This document shows, one piece after another, positions 9,400-55,800 of a stretch of DNA of 64,000 nucleotides (its first letter is position 1; each line of letters opens with the position of its first letter). A program made the translations under genes and the position numbers. The notes below the pieces were generated by a model. It saw only the letters and a list, made by a program, of their open reading frames with translations, made no database searches and had not been told where the DNA came from. The stretch spans positions 1 through 64,000 of the IMG/VR virus record IMGVR_UViG_3300036770_003657; one strand, 5' to 3'.

Positions 9400-9525
9400 A
9401 TGATGAACAATGACGAAATATTTGGTGTGATCATTTTTGTTGGCTTGATTTGGCTGATTTTAACAACTGTGAAATTGAGTGGTACAAAGAACGACGATGA
9501 ATTTAAGAGCACTAAAAAGGATTGA
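9400..9525 (+). CDS. Small single-TM protein
   Basis: GGAG SD; MMNNDEIFGVIIFVGLIWLILTTVK...; stop is the TGA of the next -35. Confidence 0.45.
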   Translation: MMNNDEIFGVIIFVGLIWLILTTVKLSGTKNDDEFKSTKKD

Positions 9526-9550
9526 CAACTGACCAGAAACCATGTATTAT
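9522..9550 (+). promoter_or_regulatory. Sigma70-type promoter
   Basis: TTGACA-17-TATTAT. Confidence 0.7.
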
Positions 9551-9581
9551 ATACACACTTAACACACACATAGGACGCAAA

Positions 9582-9728
9582 ATGAACCAATATTTTACTT
9601 GGATACTGATCAAGAGCACAAGCCAACATGTCAAAGTCTATTGTATGGCTGAAAACATAGATCAGGCCAATGCCATGTTTAGAGCGCAATACGGTAGGCA
9701 GATACTACACGGCGCGGCTCCAGTCTAA
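9582..9728 (+). CDS. Hypothetical protein (48 aa)
   Basis: AGGA SD, downstream of promoter 9522. Confidence 0.6.
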   Translation: MNQYFTWILIKSTSQHVKVYCMAENIDQANAMFRAQYGRQILHGAAPV

Positions 9729-9886
9729 TGAGAAGATATATAGGCTGGGTAGGGTCTACACAATGAACACGATATACAGAATGAGTATTTTTGCATAGTG
9801 GCCCGAGACCTCCCTCCACTCTTTTCTAACCCTGTTACCACCGTAGAAACCACCCTGTCTTAGACGTCAAAACCAAAAAAAGGTTG

Positions 9887-9926
9887 CACTTTTTCACACT
9901 TTTTCACACTTTTCTACACCTTTTAG
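9887..9926. repeat. 4 x 10-bp tandem repeat CACTTTTTCA (phased T-tracts)
   Basis: cactttttca cactttttca cacttttcta caccttttag. Confidence 0.85.
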
Positions 9927-10108
9927 ACCGATAAATACCCAGCGACAGGCCTTGTAACCTGTCCAGGAGGCATCCCAGCCCTGGAAATTCACGCGGCAGC
10001 ATAGCACCGTTTGGCATACTGGGATTCAAAAACCAAATCTACCCCCTGTTATAGAAAGATTAACGAATCCTCCTGTCAACCAAAACCATAATCCCGTCCA
10101 GGTTATTC

Positions 10109-10423
10109 GTTGTATAAGAACAACAGGTGTTGTGATTTCACTACAGTGTTGTATAAGAGCAACAGGTGTTGTGAAAGAGCCACAGGCGAGTGCGGCGGCG
10201 GTGTGGCGGAAATACAACAGAATCTTGTGGATTTTTCGTTTTCAAATTCCAATATAGATAGTATAATGAACGCCTAGACTGTTGTATTATTACAACAAAT
10301 ACCCCTACAGTTTGACAGGTCTTTAGAGCTGTACTATAATAGAGACATGCTAGTAAAAAACGACACAAAAAAAACGACACAGTCGTGTTGTATACATACG
10401 ACACTGTGTTGTACACTAGCAAC
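10109..10423. repeat. Cluster of 16-bp quasi-palindromes GTTGT-N6-ACAAC
   Basis: Copies at 10109, 10129, 10148, 10168, 10203 (degenerate), 10281, 10387 and 10408. Confidence 0.8.
10298..10340 (+). promoter_or_regulatory. Boxed early promoter 1
   Basis: AATACCC-N7-TTGACA-GGTCTTT...TATAAT, 17-bp spacer. Confidence 0.88.
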
Positions 10424-10429
10424 GACGTT

Positions 10430-10472
10430 AAAGACCCTACAGATTGACAGGTCTTTGGACCCAGTGTATAAT
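10430..10472 (+). promoter_or_regulatory. Boxed early promoter 2
   Basis: AAAGACC-N7-TTGACA-GGTCTTT...TATAAT. Confidence 0.9.
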
Positions 10473-10500
10473 GCTTTTATTGTAAACAAAAGGAGCGAAG

Positions 10501-10797
10501 ATGCAAAATTCATTAAGCGCAGACTATTCAGCAGAATTTGAGCTTATGTACAATGAGAGCATAGAAGTAGACGTAGACGATATTGCACATGAGCTCACTG
10601 TTCGCTTTGAGCAAGAGTTCGCAGACTACTTAAGGGGCTGTGACAGTGAAGACGTAGGTGCTGTTATTATATACAGACGTGGAGGAGAAGAAGTTGCGTT
10701 CTTTGACTATGAGAACATGCACGGTAGCGTCTATGAGCTAGGACACAAAAGAGCCAGCGAGACTAGCATAGAGTGGGCAGAACGTGTGGGACTATAA
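10501..10797 (+). CDS. Acidic early hypothetical protein
   Basis: GGAGCGAAG RBS; stop overlaps the next box. Confidence 0.8.
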   Translation: MQNSLSADYSAEFELMYNESIEVDVDDIAHELTVRFEQEFADYLRGCDSEDVGAVIIYRRGGEEVAFFDYENMHGSVYELGHKRASETSIEWAERVGL

Positions 10798-10838
10798 AGA
10801 CCTGACAACTTGACAGGTCTTTAGAAGGCCTGTATAAT
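10796..10838 (+). promoter_or_regulatory. Boxed early promoter 3
   Basis: AAAGACCTGACAACTTGACAGGTCTTT near-perfect palindrome...TATAAT. Confidence 0.9.
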
Positions 10839-10868
10839 GCTTGTATTGTAAACAAAAGGAGCGAAGAA

Positions 10869-11099
10869 ATGCGTGGACCCAATATGTCATATTGTATGTG
10901 CGAGAACACTCTGCTGGCCTTGCACCAAGTCATAGCAGCAATGAAAGAAGAAGGCCCTATGTTCTTAAACGATCTTAGCCGTAGTGAGCGGGAGAGCTTT
11001 GAAGAGCTGTTTAATGCTTGTGAGACCTTTGTAAACCATGCGGATGAGTTGATTGCGGGTGAGGAGGAGTTGGAACTTAGCCCCTATGAGGACGAATAA
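10869..11099 (+). CDS. Early hypothetical protein
   Basis: GGAGCGAAG RBS; NMSYCMCENT motif; stop in the next box. Confidence 0.8.
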   Translation: MRGPNMSYCMCENTLLALHQVIAAMKEEGPMFLNDLSRSERESFEELFNACETFVNHADELIAGEEELELSPYEDE

Positions 11100-11137
11100 C
11101 CTTATAGGTTGACAGGTCTTTAGAAGGCCTGTATAAT
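11095..11137 (+). promoter_or_regulatory. Boxed early promoter 4
   Basis: AATAACC-N7-TTGACA-GGTCTTT...TATAAT. Confidence 0.9.
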
Positions 11138-11166
11138 ATGGGTATAGTAGATAACAAGGAGCGAAT

Positions 11167-11319
11167 ATGAAGTATGCTTGTTGGAGTGTAGTAGGTGGAT
11201 GGGTCACAGCCCTTGTCAATGGTGAGGGTGAGGTCAATGAGTTCATTGGCCCTGTGTTTAATAGTATAACAGATCTTTGGAAGTGGCAGCGTGCTAACCT
11301 TTACGGGGAGATGGCATAA
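11167..11319 (+). CDS. Early hypothetical protein (50 aa)
   Basis: GGAGCGAAT RBS immediately upstream; not in the ORF track. Confidence 0.7.
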   Translation: MKYACWSVVGGWVTALVNGEGEVNEFIGPVFNSITDLWKWQRANLYGEMA

Positions 11320-11504
11320 TGGTTAGGGTAATCACTAACAGTTTGGGCAGTGGAGATTGGGTCATTGTGCAGGCGGGCTCAGAGACCTTGCACGAAGGAC
11401 ATAGAGTTGCTGCTATTGATCTTGTAATGATCCTACAGAATTTGGGCATACACTCAGAGCTTGTTGAGTGTAAAGACAGCGAAATGGAAGATGGAGCATA
11501 CTAA
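11319..11504 (+). CDS. Early hypothetical protein
   Basis: TAATG coupling, GGAG SD. Confidence 0.7.
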   Translation: MVRVITNSLGSGDWVIVQAGSETLHEGHRVAAIDLVMILQNLGIHSELVECKDSEMEDGAY

Positions 11505-11505
11505 A

Positions 11506-11745
11506 ATGGTATTGGCAGAAGACATTGAAATCCTTAGCACATTCACCGCAGCAGACTTGACTGAGGGTATTAGGCTCAGTGGCTATAAGGGTGATAGGTT
11601 TATAACGGCCAAGTTCTTAGGCATCACTAACAGTGGCCAGTTCTGCTATAGTGTAACTTATAAGGCTCTGGACCAGTGCATAGAGCGCACTAAGGTCTTT
11701 GTAGACGTAGACCCAGAGACGGGTGCAACTAGAGTGGATTATTAA
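11506..11745 (+). CDS. Early hypothetical protein
   Basis: GGAGC SD before ATG 11506; FLGITNSGQFCY. Confidence 0.7.
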   Translation: MVLAEDIEILSTFTAADLTEGIRLSGYKGDRFITAKFLGITNSGQFCYSVTYKALDQCIERTKVFVDVDPETGATRVDY

Positions 11746-11746
11746 G

Positions 11747-11893
11747 ATGGATACAGAACTTGTAGAGTTGATTGAAAAGGTCATAGAGCAGATCAAATGG
11801 GACTTTGAGTTGGGACAGACAGAGGACTTGGAGATCCTACTAGCCCAATGCCCTAAAGAATACTTGAGAGATTACTTGCCCGAAGGAGAGTGA
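11747..11893 (+). CDS. Early hypothetical protein (48 aa)
   Basis: Abuts neighbours; MDTELVELIEKVIEQIKWD... Confidence 0.6.
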   Translation: MDTELVELIEKVIEQIKWDFELGQTEDLEILLAQCPKEYLRDYLPEGE

Positions 11894-11894
11894 T

Positions 11895-12065
11895 ATGGAG
11901 TTCCTACAAAGAGCAGAACGGTATGCTGAGGCCCGTGGAGATGACATGTTTTTTAAATGGGTATACTCAAACCACAGGGAATATAACGATGTCGCCGATT
12001 CGGTGTGGAAGACACTGAGTTATCTTTATGGCAATCAGGTGGCAGACCTGTTGGAATTTCAATAA
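11895..12065 (+). CDS. Early hypothetical protein (56 aa)
   Basis: GGAG SD; abuts the previous stop. Confidence 0.6.
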   Translation: MEFLQRAERYAEARGDDMFFKWVYSNHREYNDVADSVWKTLSYLYGNQVADLLEFQ

Positions 12066-12078
12066 TTAGGAGAGCGAG

Positions 12079-12231
12079 ATGAGTGGAGTCCTACATAGAG
12101 TAGACGTAGTGGTCAGTCTGTGGATTGATGAGGACGCAGACCCTACGTGGGTAGTGCAGGAGATGGACTATGAGTTCCGTCACCCTGACATCAAAGAAAC
12201 AGAAATTAGGGATGTCATCACAGAGTTCTAA
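12079..12231 (+). CDS. Early hypothetical protein (50 aa)
   Basis: AGGAG SD; stop overlaps box 5. Confidence 0.65.
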   Translation: MSGVLHRVDVVVSLWIDEDADPTWVVQEMDYEFRHPDIKETEIRDVITEF

Positions 12232-12272
12232 AGACCACATAGGTTGACAGGTCTTTGGAGCGGTGCTATAAT
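12230..12272 (+). promoter_or_regulatory. Boxed early promoter 5
   Basis: AAAGACC-N7-TTGACA-GGTCTTT...TATAAT. Confidence 0.9.
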
Positions 12273-12301
12273 ATGAACATACTGTTAAACAAGGAGCAAA
12301 G

Positions 12302-12703
12302 ATGGGAACTAGAGCGCTAACTTTTGTATACGATGAGCGGGGCAATGCCGTAGTCAACCTCTATCGCCAGTTTGATGGCTACATAGCGGGACACGGAGCA
12401 GAACTTGCTGAGTTCCTCAATGGGCTCACACTGGTCAATGGCTTTGGTCGTGAGGAAAAGGGCATTGCTAATGGTATGGGCTGTTTGGCTGCTCAAATGA
12501 TTGCTCACTTCAAAGATAGTGTAGGTGGCTTTTATATCCACGCAGTCACAGAAAAGGACTGTGGTCAGGACTATGAATACCATGTATACCGGGACAGAGT
12601 TGAGGTGTTAGGTCCAGGCAGCATATTCAATCCAGGACCCAATGACCTAGTGTTCAAAGGCACTTGGGCTGAGTTCGCAGAGCATTGCAAGGTCTCAGCA
12701 TAA
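12302..12703 (+). CDS. Conserved hypothetical phage protein
   Basis: MGTR...YRQFDGY..GHG.EL...NGMGCLAAQ pattern; GGAGC RBS. Confidence 0.8.
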   Translation: MGTRALTFVYDERGNAVVNLYRQFDGYIAGHGAELAEFLNGLTLVNGFGREEKGIANGMGCLAAQMIAHFKDSVGGFYIHAVTEKDCGQDYEYHVYRDRVEVLGPGSIFNPGPNDLVFKGTWAEFAEHCKVSA

Positions 12704-12867
12704 TGGAGATCTACAGAGATGAAACTGGTAGGTACTATGCTTTTGACCCGCAGACGTGTCAACTATGCGCTCTGGAGTCAACAGGCTACACAGATGCGCA
12801 GGAGGAGGCAGATACTGTTTATGGAACGAAGGACTTTGTCGAACTTGTTGACAACTCGCAAGAGTGA
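12703..12867 (+). CDS. Early hypothetical protein (54 aa)
   Basis: TAATG coupling. Confidence 0.6.
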   Translation: MEIYRDETGRYYAFDPQTCQLCALESTGYTDAQEEADTVYGTKDFVELVDNSQE

Positions 12868-12876
12868 CTATATAAT
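12848..12876 (+). promoter_or_regulatory. Sigma70-type promoter (no inverted box)
   Basis: TTGACA-17-TATAAT upstream of the ATPase. Confidence 0.8.
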
Positions 12877-12906
12877 TAGTGCTTAATTAATACATAGGAG
12901 CGAACT

Positions 12907-13779
12907 ATGCCAAAGATGATCAACGCACAAGAACTTATGACCAAACCCACAACCTCCAGCTTTGAACTAGAGCCCACCCGCAAAGTACTAAACGAGACAG
13001 ATGACGAGATCATTGATCGCTTACGTGAACGCTTTAGTATCTTAGACGACATGACCCGTGCTGTAAAGAAGGGTGATGTACGTGCAATGATTGTTAGTGG
13101 TCCTCCAGGAGTAGGCAAGAGCTATGGAGTAGAGCGAGTGCTGAGTAGACACGATGTGTTCGCCGATGTAGCACAGGATGAAAAGCTTAAGAAGTATGAG
13201 GTAGTCAAAGGTGCTATGAGTGCCATTGGTCTGTACAAGAAATTGTACGAGTTCAGTGCTAAGAAGAACATCCTTGTGTTCGATGACTGCGACAGTGTAT
13301 TGTTGGATGATCTCAGTTTAAATATCCTTAAGGCTGCACTAGATTCTAGCGCCAAACGTACTATTCATTGGAACACGGATAGCCGCAGCCTACAGAATGA
13401 AGGAGTGCCCAACAAGTTTGAGTTCAAAGGTGGTGCCATCTTCATCACCAACATCAAATTTGAAAACGTTAGGTCAAAGAAGTTGCGTGACCACTTAGAA
13501 GCATTGGAGAGTCGTTGCCATTACTTGGATCTCACTATTGACACTGACAGAGAGAAATTATTACGTATTAGGCAAGTCACGCAAGATCACAACCTTTTTG
13601 AAGTAAATGGCTTTGAGTTTAAGGACTATGAGAAAGATGAGGTCATTGACTTCATTGATGAGAACAAGCATAAGATGCGTGAGATGAGCTTGCGTATGGT
13701 AATCAAAGTGGCAAGCTTGAAGGCCTCTATGCCCAACTGGAAGAGAGTAGCAGCCCTAACCTGCATGAAAAGAGTATAA
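12907..13779 (+). CDS. AAA+ / P-loop ATPase
   Basis: Walker A GPPGVGKS, Walker B LVFDDCD, sensor-like IFITN, ALESR. Confidence 0.85.
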   Translation: MPKMINAQELMTKPTTSSFELEPTRKVLNETDDEIIDRLRERFSILDDMTRAVKKGDVRAMIVSGPPGVGKSYGVERVLSRHDVFADVAQDEKLKKYEVVKGAMSAIGLYKKLYEFSAKKNILVFDDCDSVLLDDLSLNILKAALDSSAKRTIHWNTDSRSLQNEGVPNKFEFKGGAIFITNIKFENVRSKKLRDHLEALESRCHYLDLTIDTDREKLLRIRQVTQDHNLFEVNGFEFKDYEKDEVIDFIDENKHKMREMSLRMVIKVASLKASMPNWKRVAALTCMKRV

Positions 13780-13785
13780 TCCCCG

Positions 13786-13846
13786 TAAAAACCTGATTCG
13801 CTCCCAGGTTTTTAGCCCCCCGATTCGCTCCCGGGGGGATTTTTTT
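13786..13846 (+). ncRNA. Twin hairpin with identical ATTCGCTCC loops; candidate anti-SD sRNA; second hairpin doubles as terminator
   Basis: TAAAAACCTG-attcgctcc-CAGGTTTTTA and CCCCCCG-attcgctcc-CGGGGGG then a T-run. Confidence 0.55.
13816..13846 (+). terminator. Intrinsic terminator after the ATPase
   Basis: 7-bp GC stem followed by ATTTTTTT. Confidence 0.8.
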
Positions 13847-13867
13847 GACTGTTGTACGTGTACAACG

Positions 13868-13910
13868 AAAGACCCTACAGGTTGACAGGTCTTTGCTTTG
13901 GAGCTATAAT
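13868..13910 (+). promoter_or_regulatory. Boxed early promoter 6, preceded by GTTGTACGTGTACAAC (13851-13866)
   Basis: AAAGACC-N7-TTGACA-GGTCTTT...TATAAT. Confidence 0.9.
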
Positions 13911-13940
13911 GTGAACATACTGTTAAACAAGGAGCAAAAA

Positions 13941-14195
13941 ATGGGAATGTGGACTACGGAGAATCAGGACACTATGAAAGATGTGCTTAAGGCCTTCAAC
14001 GATGCTGCTTATGCTAACTATGGCAATCACTCTTATGCTGCTGGCTACTTGGAGAGCCTTGTTGTAGAGATGCTGGCTCACTGTCCCAAGCGGTATCAGA
14101 AGAGCTTGATACAGAGCATGATTGGTGTAACGCAACGGCAAGAGAAGGAGGCCATTGCCAAGATGAACAAGGTAGTCAATACCCACATAGGTTGA
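13941..14195 (+). CDS. Early hypothetical protein
   Basis: GGAGC RBS; YAAGYLES motif; stop is the TGA inside the next -35. Confidence 0.75.
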   Translation: MGMWTTENQDTMKDVLKAFNDAAYANYGNHSYAAGYLESLVVEMLAHCPKRYQKSLIQSMIGVTQRQEKEAIAKMNKVVNTHIG

Positions 14196-14220
14196 CAGGT
14201 CTTTGGATCGGTTGTATAAT
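14178..14220 (+). promoter_or_regulatory. Boxed early promoter 7
   Basis: AATACCC-N7-TTGACA-GGTCTTT...TATAAT. Confidence 0.9.
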
Positions 14221-14250
14221 ATGGTTATAGTAAACAACAAGGAGCAGCAA

Positions 14251-14445
14251 ATGGGTTGGATAAAGAATGGAGAGCATGTAAAGGCAGTATACATGGGCCA
14301 ACCCATTGAGGGCCGTGTTGAGGACAGCCGTGTCAAGTATGGTGGACGAGTGCAATATACAGTGGAGTTAACGCAGCCAATCCAATTGCGTTGGAGAACT
14401 GAGCAGACAACCCGTGTGCTCATTGAAGATCGAGATTTAGTATAA
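14251..14445 (+). CDS. Early hypothetical protein (small beta-barrel-like)
   Basis: GGAGC RBS; GRVEDSRVKYGGRVQYTV. Confidence 0.75.
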   Translation: MGWIKNGEHVKAVYMGQPIEGRVEDSRVKYGGRVQYTVELTQPIQLRWRTEQTTRVLIEDRDLV

Positions 14446-14455
14446 GGAGCCTATT

Positions 14456-14653
14456 ATGTGGACCAAACAAGATAGCTATCGTAGCCGTCGTTATACTTGC
14501 GAACTCTTAAGCCTTGTGGAAGACGACATGATCGACAAGGACACGTTGATTAGGGACTTATTAGGCTATTTGAGTGAGAGTGAAGTAGCGGACTTTGTTC
14601 GTAAGAATGACTTAATGCCCTGGCTCTACAATGAGGACAATGAAGATGAGTAG
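14456..14653 (+). CDS. Early hypothetical protein
   Basis: AAGGAGC RBS. Confidence 0.7.
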   Translation: MWTKQDSYRSRRYTCELLSLVEDDMIDKDTLIRDLLGYLSESEVADFVRKNDLMPWLYNEDNEDE

Positions 14654-14819
14654 AATGAGTGACTTAGATATAGAAATGCAGGAGATGTTAGAGCGTGGAG
14701 TAGGTATAGATGATGTTGCTGCCTACTTCAATGTACCCGTTGAGTGGGTATGGCAAGCTCATGCCAATCTTCTACAGAGCTTGGCTGACCTGTGGTTTGA
14801 CAACGTAGAAACTAACTAA
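14646..14819 (+). CDS. Small hypothetical protein, possible HTH
   Basis: MLERGVGIDDVAAYFNVPVEWV resembles an HTH. Confidence 0.55.
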   Translation: MSRMSDLDIEMQEMLERGVGIDDVAAYFNVPVEWVWQAHANLLQSLADLWFDNVETN

Positions 14820-14828
14820 GGAATAGAT

Positions 14829-15356
14829 ATGCCTAATTGGTGCTCAAACAAATTAACTCTCAGACACAAGCAGCCAGACCGATTGGAAGCGGCCATAGAT
14901 GCCTTCAAGGAGGGTAAGTTCTTAGAACACTTTGTTGCCTTACCCAATGGTCAATGGAACTATGACTTCTGTGTCTCCAACTGGGGAACTAAGTGGGATG
15001 TCAGTGGAGATGACAGAGATGTGGTGGTAGAACCAGATTCAGTGATCTTCTACTTTGACAGTGCGTGGAGTCCACCCTCTGAAGCATACAGAGCAATGGC
15101 AGCACAAGGCTTTGAAGTAGAGGCCCTGTACAATGAGCCAGGCATGTGCTTTGTAGGCAAGATCATAGCCGATGAGGATGGCTTTGACGATCTCTACTAC
15201 GAATATGGTAGTGAGGATTCAAACACGGTGAGACTCCTCATTGGAGAAGAACTTGATGACTACTATGGCATCAGCGAGTTTATGGAACAGATGGAAGTGG
15301 AAAGACTAGAGAACGAATTAGACGAGATCATCAACGAGGAGAATAAAGATGAGTAA
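14829..15356 (+). CDS. DUF1281/YubB-like ferredoxin-fold protein
   Basis: MPNWCSNKL...WYxxCxxNWGTKWD-like segment...FDSAWSPP...YxEPGMxF signature. Confidence 0.75.
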   Translation: MPNWCSNKLTLRHKQPDRLEAAIDAFKEGKFLEHFVALPNGQWNYDFCVSNWGTKWDVSGDDRDVVVEPDSVIFYFDSAWSPPSEAYRAMAAQGFEVEALYNEPGMCFVGKIIADEDGFDDLYYEYGSEDSNTVRLLIGEELDDYYGISEFMEQMEVERLENELDEIINEENKDE

Positions 15357-15516
15357 GGTCTTTGATTTTGTAGTGGAAGCAGCTCTACGTAGGGCTCCTG
15401 TGTGCAAGGTCTGTGAGCTGCCCACGAGTGCGGCTGTTGTAAATGGACAACGGTTGACGGCCAAACAATTGGCAAAATTCAACAAGGCAAGGCTTGACAA
15501 GGCAACGAAACGGTAG
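15349..15516 (+). CDS. Hypothetical protein (55 aa)
   Basis: GAGGAG SD; overlaps the previous stop. Confidence 0.5.
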   Translation: MSKVFDFVVEAALRRAPVCKVCELPTSAAVVNGQRLTAKQLAKFNKARLDKATKR

Positions 15517-15522
15517 TATTAT
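15494..15522 (+). promoter_or_regulatory. Sigma70-type promoter (no box)
   Basis: TTGACA-17-TATTAT. Confidence 0.7.
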
Positions 15523-15574
15523 ACGATTATGCACTAATGCATATCAACTCTGTTAAATACGAAAGGCAAATATT

Positions 15575-15958
15575 ATGGCAACTGAAAAATTATTCACTGT
15601 AGCAGGCATCAGCAAGCTTCCTTCAACCCACGGCAGCGAGTACAAGGTACGCTTTGCCAATGACGTCATGCGTGTCAAAGTCCTACTCAAAGGTGGACAC
15701 GAAGATGTGCGTCTTGTAGAACTTGATGCTCCTAGTACTAAGATGGAGGCTGTACAAATCCTCAAAGGTATGGATGAGTTTAGCGATGTCATCGCACAGG
15801 CTACCCTCAATGACTTCATTGAGGAGAATACTCCAAAGGCACCTCGTGAGAAGGCAGTTAAGGCACCTAAGATCAAGCCTGAGTCAACTCCTACTGCCAC
15901 TAAGGCACCTAAGGCCAAGATTGAGATGCCCACTGACATGGAGGATGCTCCCTTCTAA
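15575..15958 (+). CDS. Conserved phage protein with K/A/P-rich tail (possible DNA-binding)
   Basis: KVRFAND..RVKVL.KGGH motif; KAP repeats. Confidence 0.7.
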   Translation: MATEKLFTVAGISKLPSTHGSEYKVRFANDVMRVKVLLKGGHEDVRLVELDAPSTKMEAVQILKGMDEFSDVIAQATLNDFIEENTPKAPREKAVKAPKIKPESTPTATKAPKAKIEMPTDMEDAPF

Positions 15959-16148
15959 TGAGCTGGGAATTGTACGAAGTAATGGCCACAGATGATCGTG
16001 GCCATGAGTCACTCTACTATGCTACAAAGAGCTTGAAAGAGGCTAAGGCTATGGCCCAACAGGCTCTACGTGAAGGTATGGTGAGTTGCGTAGTGAATAG
16101 AGAGACTGAAGACGGAGACAGTGAGTGCGTCTTCGAGTGTAAATCATA

Positions 16149-16149
<1 letters not shown>
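15958..16149 (+). CDS. Hypothetical protein
   Basis: TAATG coupling; ends at the tRNA 5' end. Confidence 0.65.
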
Positions 16150-16227
<78 letters not shown>

Positions 16228-16243
16228 ACTACAAAGGTAACAT

Positions 16244-16522
16244 ATGGCAAGTAAACTGGACAAGTATCTTAGACCCACAGTGATCTTTGATGTACAGAAT
16301 CCTGAACATAGACAACACTATTTCAACTTCCTAGACACTAGAACTTGGAGTGCCTGTCCCTATCAGTTCATCACAGGCAATAGAGATGACAGCCCAATCT
16401 TGACTGTGGCCATAGAGCATCAATTGCTCAAATATTACAGGGACGCTGACAGAGCCTTGGCCAAGAAGGGTCACAATCTCATAGAAGTGGCCATGCGTGT
16501 GGTGGATGAGGAGCATGTCTAG
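16244..16522 (+). CDS. Hypothetical phage protein
   Basis: RPxVxFDxxNxEHR...WxxCPYQF pattern; AAGG SD. Confidence 0.75.
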   Translation: MASKLDKYLRPTVIFDVQNPEHRQHYFNFLDTRTWSACPYQFITGNRDDSPILTVAIEHQLLKYYRDADRALAKKGHNLIEVAMRVVDEEHV

Positions 16523-16542
16523 ACTGTTGTTTACGTACAACA

Positions 16543-16585
16543 AATACCCACACAAGTTGACAGGACTTTAGAGCTCGCGTATAAT
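16543..16585 (+). promoter_or_regulatory. Boxed early promoter 8, preceded by GTTGTTTACGTACAAC (16526-16541)
   Basis: AATACCC-N7-TTGACA-GGACTTT...TATAAT. Confidence 0.88.
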
Positions 16586-16618
16586 TGCTTTATTAGTTAA
16601 ACAACACAGGGCAATTAA

Positions 16619-16792
16619 ATGCAAAAAGTATATAATTTGTTTTTTTATAACGACAGCAACGAGCGTGAGCACTGGGGTACATACGGCACAAAAGTGGCTG
16701 CTGAGCGGGCCATTGTAGAGACGCAAGAGGAGTTTGGCAGTGACATTTTTGCAACAGAACAGTTTAGCATAGAGACTAGCACAGTAGCATAA
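16619..16792 (+). CDS. Early hypothetical protein (57 aa)
   Basis: Exactly fills the space between boxes 8 and 9. Confidence 0.7.
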   Translation: MQKVYNLFFYNDSNEREHWGTYGTKVAAERAIVETQEEFGSDIFATEQFSIETSTVA

Positions 16793-16833
16793 TACCCACA
16801 GAGGTTGACAGGTCTTTAGAAGGCCTGTATAAT
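16791..16833 (+). promoter_or_regulatory. Boxed early promoter 9
   Basis: AATACCC-N7-TTGACA-GGTCTTTAGAAGGCCTG-TATAAT; spacer identical to boxes 3 and 4. Confidence 0.9.
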
Positions 16834-16862
16834 GCTTGTATAGTAAACAAAAGGAGCGAAAA

Positions 16863-17066
16863 ATGGGATTTGAAAAGCGTGTTATAGAAGTGGTCAGAAC
16901 TGTTACAGACGCAGAAGCACATTTCTATGAGGGTTCACTGTTCCTGCATACAGCAGACAGAGACATAGCAGTGCTGGTCTACAATGCCCTGCGTAAAAGG
17001 GTAACAGGCAGGCTGGCATTTGGTCCTGCAGGCGAATTTGAAACTGTATACGATTTTTTAGCATAA
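16863..17066 (+). CDS. Early hypothetical protein
   Basis: GGAGCGAAA RBS. Confidence 0.75.
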   Translation: MGFEKRVIEVVRTVTDAEAHFYEGSLFLHTADRDIAVLVYNALRKRVTGRLAFGPAGEFETVYDFLA

Positions 17067-17075
17067 GGACTAGAC

Positions 17076-17396
17076 ATGTTAAAATTACATAAGGTAGAAC
17101 AGTTAGAGGATATGATTACTATACGCTTTGACTGTGACTTTTTTGTAACAATGGCTGGAGACGGCTTGTGGGGCTGTGAGGCTGGACGCAAGGTGCGAGT
17201 GTTCACCATAGATGTTAACATAAGAGACAATATGCGAGTTGAGGTCAATGTGGGACACGACAGCAATTGGGATATCTATACTGATACGGCTTTTGAGCGA
17301 GCAATCAGTGATAGGTTAGGCATCCCAGTAGGCTTTACAGAACAGGGTATGCAGGACGACGAGATGGCTAGTATGGAGGCTAAGGTATGCGTATAG
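17076..17396 (+). CDS. Early hypothetical protein
   Basis: GDGLW...IYTD..FE...FTEQGMQ pattern; AAGGA SD. Confidence 0.75.
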   Translation: MLKLHKVEQLEDMITIRFDCDFFVTMAGDGLWGCEAGRKVRVFTIDVNIRDNMRVEVNVGHDSNWDIYTDTAFERAISDRLGIPVGFTEQGMQDDEMASMEAKVCV

Positions 17397-17623
17397 TACA
17401 TGACTATGGACTGGTTAGGGTTGTGAGCTTGGGAGACCCATTTGCTAACACCTACGATATCCGTTGTGAAGTTTATGACGAGGCAGCAGACATTTGGAGG
17501 CTATGGCATGGCTTTAACAGCCTAAGCGATGACTATGCCTACACCAATGCTCGTGAGGCTGCTGGTCGTGCTATAAAGGAGTTGGCCCGACTAAAGGCAG
17601 AGGCACTCGTAGGCGCTAAATAA
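17387..17623 (+). CDS. Early hypothetical protein
   Basis: GGAGG SD; FNSLSDDYAYTNAR. Confidence 0.7.
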   Translation: MRIVHDYGLVRVVSLGDPFANTYDIRCEVYDEAADIWRLWHGFNSLSDDYAYTNAREAAGRAIKELARLKAEALVGAK

Positions 17624-17630
17624 CATCCAA

Positions 17631-17715
17631 GCTCCAATGGCGTAATAGGTAGCCGCACGGGACTTAAAATCCCGGGTCGAGAGGCGTCCCGGTTCGAGTC
17701 CGGGTTGGAGCACCA
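17631..17715 (+). tRNA. tRNA-Leu(TAA)
   Basis: GCTCCAA/TTGGAGC acceptor stem, CGGGA-CTTAAAA-TCCCG arm, long variable arm, CCA. Confidence 0.93.
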
Positions 17716-17718
17716 AAT

Positions 17719-17793
17719 ACCACCGTCGTTCAACGGATAGGACAGGAGTCTTCTAAACTCTAAATGGGGGTTCGATTCCCTCCGGTGGTGCCA
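17719..17793 (+). tRNA. tRNA-Arg(TCT)
   Basis: ACCACCG/CGGTGGT acceptor stem, GGAGT-CTTCTAA-ACTCT arm, GGTTCGA, CCA. Confidence 0.92.
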
Positions 17794-17811
17794 TACAACA
17801 AAGGACAAGAC

Positions 17812-18051
17812 ATGGGTTGGGTTGTATACACAGAACAACATGGACAGATCATCAGGTACTATAAGACATCTGGACCAGCCAAGAGGTTGGTGAACCAGCA
17901 CAATAGACTGGTGGACCAGCGTGGTTTCAGCTGGTCCAAGGGTAAGGTGGCCTGCTGCCCTTTCCCACAGTTCGAAGGTGTGCTCTTGGGCCTACGAGGA
18001 GAAGAACTAAAGATGTGGCAATTTTTCAACAGTAAGGGAATACCCACATAG
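17812..18051 (+). CDS. Early hypothetical protein
   Basis: AAGGA SD; stop inside box 10. Confidence 0.7.
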   Translation: MGWVVYTEQHGQIIRYYKTSGPAKRLVNQHNRLVDQRGFSWSKGKVACCPFPQFEGVLLGLRGEELKMWQFFNSKGIPT

Positions 18052-18081
18052 GTTGACAGGTCTTTGCTTTGATACTATAAT
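18039..18081 (+). promoter_or_regulatory. Boxed early promoter 10
   Basis: AATACCC-N7-TTGACA-GGTCTTT...TATAAT. Confidence 0.9.
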
Positions 18082-18111
18082 ATCTCTATAGTAAACAACA
18101 AGGAGCAGCAA

Positions 18112-18303
18112 ATGGGCTACAAGGTACTAGGCAAGTTTGAAGATGTTATGCAAGGCTTTGGCCCACGCAAAGGTCTAGAAGGTCCCTTCAACTTTAACGG
18201 CCGTGTGTTGTATTACGACAACAAGGAAGGCAAGTACTACGACCCACGTACTGACTTCTATGTCAGTTACGATGAGTGGTTCCAATTAGCAGGTCTTAAG
18301 TAA
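18112..18303 (+). CDS. Conserved small phage protein
   Basis: GLEGPF...GRVLYYDxKEGxYYDPxTDFY; GGAGC RBS. Confidence 0.8.
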   Translation: MGYKVLGKFEDVMQGFGPRKGLEGPFNFNGRVLYYDNKEGKYYDPRTDFYVSYDEWFQLAGLK

Positions 18304-18313
18304 GGAGATTGAC

Positions 18314-18487
18314 ATGATTGAGCGTAATCTAAATGCAGCGGGTCGGAGAGCCAATGTGCTGTTCGGCTTTGTTGAGGTGGTAGACGGCTTGGTCAGAGTA
18401 TTGAGCTTGGGCTTCCTCCACACCCGCCTGTGCCTAATCGTTACCCGTTGGCAAGTCCGTCGGGCTTTCCAAAACCGTAGAGGTTGA
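18314..18487 (+). CDS. Early hypothetical protein (57 aa)
   Basis: AAGGAG SD; stop is the TGA of the next -35. Confidence 0.6.
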   Translation: MIERNLNAAGRRANVLFGFVEVVDGLVRVLSLGFLHTRLCLIVTRWQVRRAFQNRRG

Positions 18488-18512
18488 CACTAGCACCGAA
18501 AGGTGCTATACT
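18470..18512 (+). promoter_or_regulatory. Variant early promoter with spacer hairpin
   Basis: TTGACA-17-TATACT; TAGCACC-GAAA-GGTGCTA replaces the right half-box; leader shared with box 11. Confidence 0.8.
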
Positions 18513-18542
18513 ATGGTTACAGTGAACAACAAGGAGCGGCAA

Positions 18543-18713
18543 ATGGATCAAGCAATCTACGTTATAGAAGGTGTTGGTGAGTACGGCTTGGACCTGGATC
18601 ACAGCCCAGGAGTTGGCGGCTACTATGTCAAACTCTACGATGGATCCTACGATGCCAGTGGCTTTGACACTGAACGAGAAGCACGAGAAGAACTGGAGTA
18701 CCTAACCCAATGA
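18543..18713 (+). CDS. Early hypothetical protein
   Basis: GGAGCG RBS. Confidence 0.7.
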   Translation: MDQAIYVIEGVGEYGLDLDHSPGVGGYYVKLYDGSYDASGFDTEREAREELEYLTQ

Positions 18714-18880
18714 ACACCGAGGAGCAGGAGATCTCTTACTATGTGGTCATAGAGCACGAGGGCGAAACTGCTCGCTTAGAGTGTGCTAGCCTTGAAGAAG
18801 CACAGCGGGTAAGGCAAAGTTTTGTCAACTGGGGTGGCTACCAATCTGTTGAGATTCTCAGCAAAGACCCTACAGGTTGA
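18710..18880 (+). CDS. Early hypothetical protein (56 aa)
   Basis: GGAG SD, ATGA overlap; stop is the TGA of the next -35. Confidence 0.65.
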   Translation: MNTEEQEISYYVVIEHEGETARLECASLEEAQRVRQSFVNWGGYQSVEILSKDPTG

Positions 18881-18905
18881 CAGGGTATTCAAACGGTGCT
18901 ATACT
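18863..18905 (+). promoter_or_regulatory. Boxed early promoter 11
   Basis: AAAGACC-N7-TTGACA-GGGTATT...TATACT. Confidence 0.9.
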
Positions 18906-18935
18906 ATGGTTACAGTGAACAACAAGGAGCAAGAA

Positions 18936-19160
18936 ATGAACGAAAGAATCCGAGAACTTGCTGAACAGGCTGAATGGCGATTTGCCGACCGAGCAACAGG
19001 TAATTTTTCCGAATATGATCAACGATTAGAAAAGTTCGCCGAGTTGATTGTACGGAATTGTATTGTAGACTTTTACAGAAATTACCTAGATACCACTAGT
19101 GATGAAGATATCACCAAGCAGGTTGATAGATATGTAAAACAACAATTTGGAGTTGAATAA
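18936..19160 (+). CDS. Small phage protein, 'EKFAELIV' paralog family, in cassette form
   Basis: MNERIRELAEQA...EKFAELIVRNC...QFGVE. Confidence 0.8.
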   Translation: MNERIRELAEQAEWRFADRATGNFSEYDQRLEKFAELIVRNCIVDFYRNYLDTTSDEDITKQVDRYVKQQFGVE

Positions 19161-19198
19161 CCCTACAGGTTGACAGGTCTTTGGAACGGCACTATAAT
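19156..19198 (+). promoter_or_regulatory. Boxed early promoter 12
   Basis: AATAACC-N7-TTGACA-GGTCTTT...TATAAT. Confidence 0.9.
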
Positions 19199-19227
19199 AG
19201 ACACATAGTAAACAAAAGGAGCGATAG

Positions 19228-19344
19228 ATGAGCAAGTTGGATAGAGTGTTAGATGAACTGTTTTGGTTGGCTCTTTTTGCCATCCCCCCAGTGTTCGTTG
19301 TAACCTGTGTGAGTGGTATTGTTTACGGCCTGTTGTTTAGGTAA
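19228..19344 (+). CDS. 38-aa single-TM micro-protein
   Basis: GGAGCGAT RBS; fills the cassette between boxes 12 and 13. Confidence 0.7.
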   Translation: MSKLDRVLDELFWLALFAIPPVFVVTCVSGIVYGLLFR

Positions 19345-19385
19345 TACCCACATAGGTTGACAGGTCTTTGGAACGGTTGTATAAT
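19343..19385 (+). promoter_or_regulatory. Boxed early promoter 13
   Basis: AATACCC-N7-TTGACA-GGTCTTT...TATAAT. Confidence 0.9.
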
Positions 19386-19472
19386 ATGGTTATAGTAAGC
19401 AAGCAGGGGCGAACAGACAAATTGCTTAGGCAGATGACCCCTGTGGACTTACCCAACATTTAGGAGCAACAA

Positions 19473-19772
19473 ATGGCCAAACTTATGATCCAGACCCAAG
19501 TACTTGAAAACTACGGCACTGAGTTCCGTCCACGCTGGAAAGCCAAAGGAGGCGACGACTATGTGGTACCCAACTTCACCCAATTCAATGACATCCACGC
19601 CGCTATCGATAGCATCAGGCAGCAGATTGAGACCGATAACAGTTTCTACCAGGAGTACATCGTTGACTGGTACGTGGCTGAGGACAACGAACTCACTAAG
19701 TGGGAACAACAGCAACTCGATCTCGACGGCAGGATCATCTACCCGGCAAAAGAGCTGGTGGCTGTAGCCTAA
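19473..19772 (+). CDS. Conserved hypothetical phage protein
   Basis: KLMIQTQVLENY...WKAKGG.DY pattern; GGAGC RBS. Confidence 0.8.
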   Translation: MAKLMIQTQVLENYGTEFRPRWKAKGGDDYVVPNFTQFNDIHAAIDSIRQQIETDNSFYQEYIVDWYVAEDNELTKWEQQQLDLDGRIIYPAKELVAVA

Positions 19773-19782
19773 GGAGCAGACA

Positions 19783-19992
19783 ATGATAGAACTACACGGA
19801 TTGACCCGCAAGCAACGAATCCTAGCGGACACTCTTTGGAACAAATGCCAAAGCCAACAGGAAGTTGACTACATTCTCCAAACCTTTGGAGTGGATGCTC
19901 GTATTGTATACGAGATGATGTTGGCCCACAGCATGGACCAATATACACAAACGGATGAGGCTATGATGGTACTAGAGAGGTTTATGCTATGA
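19783..19992 (+). CDS. Early hypothetical protein
   Basis: AAGGAGC RBS. Confidence 0.7.
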   Translation: MIELHGLTRKQRILADTLWNKCQSQQEVDYILQTFGVDARIVYEMMLAHSMDQYTQTDEAMMVLERFML

Positions 19993-20270
19993 GGGTAGAA
20001 GCCATACACGGTGCAGGCTCCAGTGCTAGGGAGGTCATGATGGAGATGTGGAAGATGTCAATGACCCAGAGACTTATGCAGGACATGAAGAACAGGGTAA
20101 ACGGACAAAGCCGCCATCATAGCCAAGACATTATGGTGAACAGTGTGGGATCAGAGAACATCCATAGCCGTCCAGATAAGGACCGTCCACAGCCAGTTGA
20201 GCCTGCTGTGAAGATACATCTTAGTCCACAGGCCCAACTTATGGCCAAGATCAATACCCACACAGATTGA
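19989..20270 (+). CDS. Early hypothetical protein
   Basis: ATGA overlap; stop is the TGA of the next -35. Confidence 0.6.
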   Translation: MRVEAIHGAGSSAREVMMEMWKMSMTQRLMQDMKNRVNGQSRHHSQDIMVNSVGSENIHSRPDKDRPQPVEPAVKIHLSPQAQLMAKINTHTD

Positions 20271-20295
20271 CAGGTCTTTGGAATGAGTGCATAAT
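20253..20295 (+). promoter_or_regulatory. Boxed early promoter 14
   Basis: AATACCC-N7-TTGACA-GGTCTTT...CATAAT. Confidence 0.88.
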
Positions 20296-20325
20296 ACGAA
20301 CATACTAACACAACGGAGCAACAAG

Positions 20326-20541
20326 ATGCAAACCCTACTAGTTCATACCCTTGTACAATTCATCCTCAAGCGTCGTGCAGACTATCCCAGACATTTTAGC
20401 ATCAAACGAAGTGAACTTAACATTGTGGCATATCATAGTTTGGGTGTGGAGAGCCTCCGTTATATGACTGTGAAGAACTTAGAGACTGTGGCTTCAATGG
20501 TCAATGGTACTTACGAAAAGGCTCGTATAGAGTTCAACTAA
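20326..20541 (+). CDS. Early hypothetical protein
   Basis: GGAGC RBS; stop overlaps box 15. Confidence 0.7.
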   Translation: MQTLLVHTLVQFILKRRADYPRHFSIKRSELNIVAYHSLGVESLRYMTVKNLETVASMVNGTYEKARIEFN

Positions 20542-20582
20542 TACCCACACAGATTGACAGGTCTTTGGAACGAGTGCATAAT
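20540..20582 (+). promoter_or_regulatory. Boxed early promoter 15
   Basis: 50/51-nt identical to box 14 and its first leader bases. Confidence 0.88.
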
Positions 20583-20588
20583 ACGAAC

Positions 20589-20915
20589 ATGAAGACAAAA
20601 CGAACAGCCCGTAAAGACAGCACGTTCATCATCTACGAAGTCGTTGCTAGCGACGGCAACAATTACATTGGACTTACTCGTAAGGGTACTACCACTGTAG
20701 CAAAGGCCGTTGCTGAACGATGGAGAAAGCATAAGAGTCGTGCTCGTAACGAACAGAGAGACTGGGCCCTATACACTCACTTACGCAACGGTGGACTGGA
20801 CATGGAGTGGGAACACAAGATCATAGCCATTGTTAGAGGTCGTGCTGAAGCATATGCACAAGAGCGCTGTGTTGTACGAGAACAACAACCCACACTGAAT
20901 ACACAATACAACTAA
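20589..20915 (+). CDS. GIY-YIG family nuclease (minimal domain), leaderless
   Basis: IIYEV...NYIGLT...ERWRKH...AYAQE...LN; ATG 7 nt after the -10. Confidence 0.8.
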   Translation: MKTKRTARKDSTFIIYEVVASDGNNYIGLTRKGTTTVAKAVAERWRKHKSRARNEQRDWALYTHLRNGGLDMEWEHKIIAIVRGRAEAYAQERCVVREQQPTLNTQYN

Positions 20916-20956
20916 TAACCCTACAGGTTGACAGGGTATTGGAACACTGCTATACT
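20914..20956 (+). promoter_or_regulatory. Boxed early promoter 16
   Basis: AATAACC-N7-TTGACA-GGGTATT...TATACT. Confidence 0.9.
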
Positions 20957-21596: not shown

Positions 21597-21761
21597 ATGG
21601 ATTTAAACTATTACACTGCGCTAACACCAGAAGAAGTCAACCGTAAGTTAAATGAAGTCTTTGCCAAGGAAATAGTATGGCAGCGTGAGGAATTATTAAG
21701 ACAGCGGGCGTTAATAGATCAACAAACTGAACAAATAGTTAAACTATTATTAAGTAAGTAG
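21597..21761 (+). CDS. Small coiled-coil protein
   Basis: GTAAATA at 21569 and GGGGAG SD before ATG 21597. Confidence 0.55.
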   Translation: MDLNYYTALTPEEVNRKLNEVFAKEIVWQREELLRQRALIDQQTEQIVKLLLSK

Positions 21762-52842: not shown

Positions 52843-55800
52843 TTATTCCTCATCCGTCTTAAGTTTGTCTAAATCTACAGAATATGATGTACTATCTAGT
52901 GTTGTCTGTGTACCTCTAATTTCAGCTACTTGAATCTTTAAGAATTCAGATACTTTATTATTCGATTCTGCAAGACTCTTTCCAATATCACTCCAAACTG
53001 TACCTTGTTTCCTAACCACAGTAATTCTTGTGTTTACCGGTATACTTTTATCTAGTTTAATAAATGCTACAGGTCTACCATTTGTAGTACCGTGATCTAC
53101 CCCATCTGTAATAAAATCTGCCGCATAATTTACATCTCCTTCTGGACTATGTGGATGTATTTCTGCATTATGAATAGTATATTCATATTTTTTAAGTCTT
53201 GTAGTACCGATAAAAATTTCAGTATCTAAAACATTCTTGTCAAAATTATTAGTTATAGAATTACTTCTTACCACAGGTAACCAAGGAACTACAATTATTT
53301 CAATATTTCCTGAATCGTTTACTGAGCCAAAATCAGTTTGTTCCCAATTAGGATTGTTAGCACTTGGATGATCAGTAACATTACTTAATGTTTCCTGCCA
53401 CCAATCTGTTTCTAAATCGGGTTGTTGATTAATATTTTTAATAACACCATCTACAGTTTTTATTGAAGTATATAACTTATTGTTATATACAACTTGTTGG
53501 TTAAGTTTATAAATTATTTGACTATCCCATAAGTCATAATTAACGCCATTAACAGATAACCAATTAGTGTTGTTGTAACTTACTACGTCATTTTTAAAAT
53601 ACCTTATAGCAGGTTGCCATTCACCACTCCAATTATAGGTAATTATTACGTCCTCATATGGAATATTTTCGTCAAATCCTATATCATTTACTTCTGTTCC
53701 TACGCTGTGTACTAGTGGAACACCAGTGCCTAGAGTACCCCTACGTAGATCCATTAGTCTATTACCAATTCGTGTATAATATTCTATTCTTTCACCATTT
53801 ATATAAACTATACCTGGTAAATTACTTTCCTTAATTGGAAATGCTACTCTATTACTTTGTTCAATAATTACTTCTTTATCAGTACTTGTAAGATTTTGTA
53901 TTAATCGTGTTGTTCTATTTCTACTTAAACGTTTATAAGTATAGTCATTTAACATGTCTTTGAATAACATAAAACTTACAGGAGTTCTTTCTATATTACT
54001 AACAAAGGTAATAATACCTATCTTATCATCACCATTAGGTTCATCTACTAATTTGATGCTCTTTTTATCTTCTTGTAGTATATAATCTGTTAAAGGAACT
54101 AGTAATTTTTTGTTTTTAGTGACCCATACATAATTACTATTTTTAATTTCTTGATCTAGATAAAATACCCCGCCACTGGCCTGTATCAAAATTGGATAGT
54201 AGGCATTTTCTAATAGTAAAGTATTGTTATTTTCTATATCTAGATATGTTCTATTAATACCTAATAGATCGTGGTTAGTCATTGCAATCACTTCTATTCT
54301 AGTACCTGCTGGAAAGGGCACTCTAAATCTTATTCTACTGTATCCTAGTGTATTGTCTATAAAATATTCTGCAAATTTAACAATAGTAACTAATACTAGT
54401 GCATTTTCTCTATAGTAATTAGGTTTGATAGTTATTACGCCATCTAATAAATTTAAAGTATATGCAATAGCATCAGGAACTTTTATACCATCTATAAACA
54501 CTTCATAATCAGTACTTGAGTAAACATCTAAATCATTTTTATTCAAGGGTATAGGATATTGTGTTCTTCTATTAGTTAGAGTAAATTTGAATTGATCCAC
54601 ACTATTCAATATATCATCACCTACTCTAACTATTGTACTAACTCCTAATGGAATCTTATATCCTACAAAATTTTGTAAATTGAATATAGTACTAGTACCA
54701 TTGCTTATAATAATTTCTCTAGTCAAAATACTTTGACTTACATCACTGCTTAAGAACACACTGAATACCAGTATATCGCCTTGTTTAACTACTTCTGGAA
54801 ATTTAATTCCAATTTTACCAACTTTAATATAAGCATCTACATTATCTTGCACTTTTTCCCAATATTTTTCATTTGGTATTTGTGTATTATCAGCTATGTC
54901 TAAAACAAAAGGCAAATTATTTCTATTACTATTAACTAAACTTTTAAACAATGTATTTTGATATACTATTTCATCACCTATTTTATAAAATACGGTATTT
55001 TGCCAAGATCCATAGGTTTTAAATGGTATATTAGTTAGTACTCTGCCTGCTACAACTGTAAACACTCTGACATTTGGTTGGTGATCAATATCTAATATGA
55101 TAATTTCACTATCTTCTTCTACAACAAAACTATTAGTTTCTATCATATCTAAACCATTGAATCCTAGACCAATTACGGATAAGTCTTGATTTTCTTCAGG
55201 TGTCTCAAAAAGAGTTATAGTTAAATTATTGTAATCAAAATAATAATCATCAATGCTTAATAATCTTTCATTTAGTTTTACAATAATAGCTTTGTCATTG
55301 TTTGGATAATTTGTTATGGTGTAATCTTTACTACTACCATCTGTAATAAATCTTTCACAAAATACTTCACTAGTAACTGTGGTATTTCTTTCAAACACTT
55401 TTATAGCCAATGTATCATAAACGTGTCCTGGCAACATTTCCTCAGGTGCAGGACTCGTTGTAGGTGTAATAAAGTTATCACCATCTATTATGATATCATC
55501 TGCTCGTAATCCACTAGCTGTTCTATAAATTGGGTTAAGTTTGGGTAAATTACCACCATCTATAATAGTATCATATAGTTCGTCATCTGTTGGTTCTCCT
55601 GCATCCCAATTTCTGCTGCCCCAACTATAAGCTCCGTCCCATAAATTAGGCTTGTCAAAACCAATTCCAGTAACACTTACACCACCATAATCAATACCAA
55701 TCATTAATTGATCAAAATCAATACCTAACATGCCACTGGTTGGTTTATAAAAATACTTTATTCTTTCTAAAGCATTTAAATTATTAAAGTCTTTATCATA

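Follow-up and report, generated by a model that had tools for sequence, protein, structure and literature searches.

Why should an uncultured phage carry, directly after an early ATPase gene, two hairpins with unrelated stems but the same loop, and why should that loop be the exact antisense of the ribosome-binding site (RBS) used by its early genes? The locus lies in a 64,000 nt stretch of DNA (hereafter, the window), which is part of a 399,796-bp IMG/VR contig. An earlier note, made from the sequence alone, proposed that the hairpins form a 3'-UTR-derived, anti-Shine-Dalgarno (SD) RNA controlling the translation of early phage genes, and suggested loop conservation and loop/RBS covariation in relatives as a test. 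We carried out this test and the outcome was positive. Hundreds of relatives keep the locus, and the complementarity and its selection are shown below, whereas expression of the RNA, the direction of its effect and its timing are inferred.

The sequence is as the note described. Hairpin 1 consists of TAAAAACCTG (13786-13795), the loop ATTCGCTCC (13796-13804) and CAGGTTTTTA (13805-13814). Hairpin 2 consists of CCCCCCG (13816-13822), the same loop (13823-13831) and CGGGGGG (13832-13838), followed by A and then T7 at 13840-13846. RNAfold predicts exactly these two hairpins, with energies of -9.2 and -15.1 kcal/mol, and every loop base is at least 0.99 unpaired in the ensemble. Hairpin 2, with its all-G-C stem and U7 tract, is a standard intrinsic terminator, and was missed by a terminator scan only because that scan allows loops of 3-8 nt. 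No other GCUCC-loop hairpin was found in the 1-23 kb region of the window. The features relevant to the locus are as follows.

12848..12876 (+): sigma-70 consensus promoter (TTGACA-17-TATAAT) inferred to drive the ATPase mRNA and, by read-through to 13846, the twin-hairpin 3' end.
12897..12904 (+): GGAGCGAA, the RBS of the ATPase gene itself and a predicted target of the loops (duplex with the loop, -13.9 kcal/mol).
12907..13779 (+): 290-aa P-loop ATPase (PHROG 1250; homologue of T4-type nrdC.10), the syntenic anchor of the RNA in relatives; the ORF ends 6 nt before hairpin 1.
13786..13814 (+): hairpin 1, with a 10-bp stem and the 9-nt loop AUUCGCUCC (13796-13804).
13816..13846 (+): hairpin 2, with a 7-bp G+C stem, the same loop (13823-13831) and a U7 tract; intrinsic terminator and second anti-RBS loop.
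10492..10499 (+): predicted target RBS GGAGCGAA of a 98-aa early ORF (start 10501), behind promoter 10444.
10858..10865 (+): predicted target RBS GGAGCGAA of a 76-aa early ORF (start 10869), behind promoter 10810.
11158..11166 (+): predicted target RBS GGAGCGAAT (9 of 9) of a 50-aa early ORF (start 11167), behind promoter 11109 (-15.5 kcal/mol).
16853..16860 (+): predicted target RBS GGAGCGAA of an early ORF starting at 16863, behind promoter 16805.
19218..19224 (+): predicted target RBS GGAGCGA (7 of 8), behind promoter 19170 (-13.2 kcal/mol).

The antisense matches listed in the note are correct, and one more copy of GGAGCGAA, which it had missed, occurs on the + strand at 45312 but is not next to a start codon. 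The other five perfect sites lie 1-4 nt before an ATG. Over both strands there are 8 matches, against 0.35 expected from shuffled sequences. Two corrections are needed. Firstly, the conserved complementarity is 8 nt (UUCGCUCC:GGAGCGAA) and not 9, as the ninth RBS base is T in only 5 of 129 distinct contexts in relatives. Secondly, two identical loops is not the rule for the family, as members carry from one to five loops, and the closest relatives of the window share its architecture but have CTTCGCTCC or CTAGGCTCC in loop 2.

Between about 9.5 and 21 kb (9522-20956, + strand) lie 20 of the 21 TTGACA-N17-TATAAT-type promoters of the window, each preceding a small ORF. Most sit in a repeated module, AAAGACC..TTGACA..GGTCTTT, then TATAAT, then an A-rich leader of about 20 nt ending in GGAGC, then ATG. 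The remark in the note that other early genes keep GGAGC is right, as 15 of the 21 promoter-proximal leaders have it. This arrangement matches that published for the PeSL (promoter-early stem-loop) cassettes of T4-type phages, which are repeated modules of stem-loop, sigma-70-like promoter, SD and ATG in a hyperplastic region of small ORFs (PMC2839356; PMC4122927), and the five GGAGCGAA sites are therefore the SD ends of promoter-proximal leaders. PeSLs are presented as recombination and expression modules (PMC4122927), and we saw no antisense RNA matched to their SD in that account. Three tRNA genes, Met-CAT (16149-16227), Leu-TAA (17631-17715) and Arg-TCT (17719-17793), lie among the early cassettes, and relatives also carry tRNAs in this region. 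No promoter-like site with 9 or more of 12 matches lies on the + strand between 12876 and 13882, so that in the window the hairpins represent the 3' end of the ATPase mRNA, and the description '3'-UTR-derived' fits.

A scan of viral contigs for two copies of ATTCGCTCC, and a protein-anchored search with the ATPase, converged on the same loci. In 48 non-redundant related viral contigs the loop never changes while the stems differ completely, and it is invariant across ATPase homologues of roughly 60-88% identity. In relatives whose ATPase is 65-88% identical, the stretch after the stop codon keeps ATTCGCTCC once, twice or three times, while the stems have nothing in common with those of the window. 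Typical contexts are CCAACG-loop-CGGCAA and TAAGCCCG-loop-CGGCA, the related locus L111 has three AT-rich stems, and L153 has 7-nt TCGCTCC loops with a compensated stem. In one sub-clade (L164-L177 and similar loci) two small genes are inserted directly after the ATPase, one Cys-rich (..KSYC..HY..) and the other resembling a membrane protein. Of 23 class A loci (those of the GGAGCGAA type) that lack an adjacent RNA but have enough sequence, 21 have a single hairpin 600-870 nt further downstream. In 25 such single-hairpin members CCGAUUCGCUCCCGGGG is invariant, and 5 of 6 outer-stem pairs show compensatory changes. Some relatives have a second copy of the loop RNA after a different gene, and others have a free-standing copy, in a neighbourhood whose genes use GAGGTGG RBSs (L028 2978-3015; L097; L050 4612-4660; L056; L068). 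In L050, L056 and L068 the RNA lies behind its own TTGACA-17-TATACT promoter, so that a 3'-UTR origin does not fit all relatives, and these other contexts argue for a trans-acting molecule.

In the 48 non-redundant class A loci (440 kb), GGAGCGAA occurs 135 times on the RNA-sense strand, and 134 of these are within 0-6 nt of a following ATG. It accounts for 26% of all GGAG..ATG sites, the next most common being GGAGCGAC, GGAGCGAT and GGAGCGAG, and its 129 distinct contexts carry little information outside the 8-mer. Over all loci, 224 of 232 distinct contexts have an ATG 1-5 nt downstream and 216 have a -10-like hexamer 13-33 nt upstream, so that the motif marks the first gene behind an early promoter, on a very short 5'UTR. 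The bases CGAA would not be expected to pair with the canonical 16S 3' end, so the SD function does not explain them. On the other hand, the lineage of the window uses the perfect target at only 5-6 of about 20 early leaders, and its nearest relatives at 0-2.

More distant ATPase loci revealed a sister clade (class B) in which both sides have changed together. Here, the dominant early RBS is GAGGGCA(A), with 11 copies in L210 and 11 each in L232 and L244, and the post-ATPase region holds 2-5 hairpins with (U)GCCCUC in or at the loop. Among 153 non-redundant ATPase loci, RBS class against loop class gave 38 A/A, 26 B/B and no crossed case. The antisense motif occurs at 3.6-4.7 per kb in the 305 nt after the ATPase and at 0.03-0.08 per kb elsewhere on that strand, a 50-190 fold difference. 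On a tree of the ATPase, class B is one clade (support 93), and the switch is therefore a single evolutionary event, not repeated covariation. The weight of the argument lies in the exact complementarity of both classes, which extends 4 nt (class A) and only 2-3 nt (class B) beyond the generic SD/anti-SD relation. Finer covariation within class B, between the base 5' of GCCCUC and the base 3' of GAGGGC, was looked for but not found, and some sub-lineages have drifted RBSs (AAGGGCAAA, AGAGGGAA) with unchanged loops. A T-loop or tRNA mimic, a 16S 3'-end mimic, a boxA/nut-like site and 16S h24 (GGAGCGAAC in some phyla) were also considered as partners, but none explains the class B switch.

The related phages L214, L213 and L218 have equally uniform but different early RBSs (AACGGAGAAAC, CAACGGAGCA, CAAGGAGCA), with AACGGAGAAAC found 8-9 times in L214 (e.g. 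at 55, 318 and 799), yet no antisense loop (predicted as GUUUCUCCG for L214) was found within the 12 kb examined for each, and uniform RBSs can therefore arise from module spread alone. In the search for a third RBS/loop class, a scan for twin GTTTCTCCG loops gave only chance-like hits. As a control, a twin-loop scan with an unrelated 9-mer found a complementary RBS in 3 of 112 loci, against 27 of 120 for ATTCGCTCC.

A near-identity search of cultured phages found no match, the best cultured relatives of the ATPase (PA5oct, T4-like nrdC.10) are less than 50% identical, and PA5oct, Acj9 and Merlin lack the RNA after the gene. A cmscan against Rfam (E up to 1) of 11 loci, including the window region, returned tRNAs and three sub-threshold matches (Plastid-ycf2, YrlA) that overlap those tRNA genes, with nothing at the RNA locus. 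Literature searches by keyword and by sequence string returned nothing relevant. The scan of bacterial genomes for the twin loop gave 95 hits, but all were tandem repeats or REP-like palindromes in which ATTCGC is part of a stem, so no cellular homologue was found. Those in Thalassolituus (L308, L313, L333) and a Natronospirales MAG (L304, L328, L358) are REP-like repeats of the form TCGCGAAT..GATTCGCTCCCACAGG that contain the same 11-mer, and are structurally unrelated to the phage hairpins.

Taken together, the best explanation (probability about 0.6) is that the twin hairpin is the window's copy of a conserved phage regulatory RNA, transcribed by host RNA polymerase from the early promoter at 12848 as the 3' end of the ATPase mRNA and terminated at hairpin 2 plus U7. 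Its single-stranded loops would pair with the extended SD, GGAGCGAA, which lies about 13-16 nt from the 5' end of the short leaders of promoter-proximal early genes, including that of the ATPase. The loop:RBS duplex is predicted at -13.2 to -15.5 kcal/mol (-13.9 to -15.5 for the five perfect sites), against -6.5 to -9.0 for the same RBSs paired with an E. coli-type 16S 3' end, a difference of about 6 kcal/mol. The six best-scoring of the window's 161 initiation regions include these five early genes (the sixth, at 21597, pairs partly with a stem base), and the median over all regions is -5.1 kcal/mol. Pairing would therefore block 30S binding and shut down early translation. There are no expression data for these uncultured phages, so that the stability of the RNA, its action in trans and a repressive outcome are inferred, as is the suggestion in the note that GGAGG mRNAs are spared. 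The putative repressor would be made from the same early promoters as its targets, so the timing has to be assumed, perhaps with the structured 3' fragment gaining the upper hand as it outlives the mRNA bodies. The RBS of the ATPase carries the class motif in 50 of 60 class A contexts and 17 of 25 class B contexts, and so the RNA would also be autoregulatory.

Early-gene shut-off is understood mainly through the RegB and RegA proteins of T4. RegB cuts GGAG in early translation-initiation regions and RegA competes with the ribosome on about 30 mRNAs (PMC3014915), a similar logic to that proposed here, except that recognition would be by RNA-RNA pairing. Among RNAs, Staphylococcus aureus RNAIII and the RsaE/RoxS-type sRNAs are thought to use a short C-rich loop, repeated on different stems, to pair with G-rich RBSs of several mRNAs and block initiation, but in the present case the RNA is phage-encoded, the predicted targets are the phage's own early genes, and the match extends 2-4 nt beyond the SD into a private sequence. 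The c4 antisense RNA of phages P1 and P7 (RF01695) appears to be made from the same transcription unit as its target and to expose two loops complementary to sites that include an RBS. However, c4 controls one operon (icd/ant) in a temperate phage, whereas a regulon of many early leaders would be involved here, in virulent T4-like or huge phages, and no match to RF01695 was found in the loci scanned. The position immediately after a stop codon, sharing the intrinsic terminator and U-tail of the mRNA, is that of 3'UTR-derived enterobacterial sRNAs such as CpxQ, SroC and DapZ, although some relatives have a separate promoter. The RNA has not been shown to be a member of any of these families.

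Phage-encoded trans-acting small RNAs with a defined regulon are rare, and in this case the sequence alone defines the regulator, its seed and dozens of targets per genome, across hundreds of environmental phages. A wider reading, about as likely as not, is that a large group of uncultured T4-related and huge phages run an RNA-only early-gene shut-off, in which a multi-loop small RNA reads a private extension of the SD that distinguishes early phage messages from host and late messages, and which has been re-written at least once (GGAGCGAA to GAGGGCAA) together with the loops. The proposed mechanism would also explain why PeSL-type early leaders keep non-canonical bases after GGAG and, if it holds, classes A and B would be a natural orthogonal pair offering compact translational switches.

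Two alternatives accept the pairing, but both appear unlikely. In the first, the loops act only in cis, on the RBS of the same ATPase mRNA, and other early genes share the motif because promoter-leader modules are copied and homogenised. This is consistent with the frequent presence of the class motif at the ATPase RBS, the nearly constant linkage of the RNA to this gene, and the uniform RBSs of related phages with no detectable RNA. However, the 8-mer is invariant in 129-232 distinct leaders whose flanks have diverged, copies exist behind their own promoter and after another gene, and members carry up to 5 loops per RNA. In the second, the outcome of pairing is protective or positive, for example by shielding the GGAG site from decay or from a RegB-type endonuclease. 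RNA structure does protect against RegB cleavage in T4 (PMC3014915), and the RNA would be made at the same time as its targets, but a duplex over the SD excludes the 30S subunit, and sRNAs that cover the SD, such as RNAIII, RsaE, OxyS and c4, are generally regarded as repressors.

Less likely still is that the motif is a double-stranded DNA operator for a phage or host protein, present in one orientation downstream of early promoters and in the other at the end of the ATPase operon. The motif does lie at a fairly fixed distance from the -10 hexamer (peak 19-23 nt), and a change in protein specificity would also alter both kinds of site together. This does not explain why the inverted copies are always displayed in hairpin loops with covarying stems and occur only in that RNA locus, while the sense copies double as SD sequences 1-5 nt from the ATG. 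That these are ordinary tandem terminators, with the loop identity and RBS match due to chance or to a remnant of an inverted leader fragment, is very unlikely: hairpin 2 is a textbook terminator, and the reverse complement of hairpin 1 (TAAAAACCTGGGAGCGAAT) vaguely resembles the A-rich leader, but this reading is contradicted by the invariant loop in dozens of diverged phages with unrelated stems, by the matched class B and by the control scan. The alternative raised in the note, an opposite-strand sponge for a CsrA/RsmA-type protein, is rejected, since although the minus-strand loops read GGAGCGAAU and fold equally well, there is no minus-strand promoter nearby or terminator, the U-tract and all flanking genes are on the + strand, the + strand loops and the class B antisense loops (GAGGGCA) contain no GGA, and the Rfam scans matched nothing here, including CsrB, RsmY and RsmZ.

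A palindrome, TGTTGT-N5-ACAAC, lies immediately after the twin-hairpin terminator (13850-13866) and recurs in the window (10280-10297, 16525-16542, 18206-18223, 20870-20889 and others), with 13 matches against 0.55 expected. Relatives such as L075, L065 and L061 have CTGTTGT..ACAACAG at the same place, and it could be an operator or another hairpin element. In several class A relatives (L142, L149, L150, L157) a small hairpin-like motif, GGTGCAAAATCACC, recurs about 150-250 nt after the RNA. At about 22000 there is a sharp change in composition, from 39-47% G+C with genes on the + strand (1-22 kb) to 28-40% G+C with genes mostly on the - strand (22-64 kb), which could be an early/late boundary, acquired DNA or an assembly join. 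The low-G+C part includes a single ORF of 3556 aa (52843-63513, - strand).
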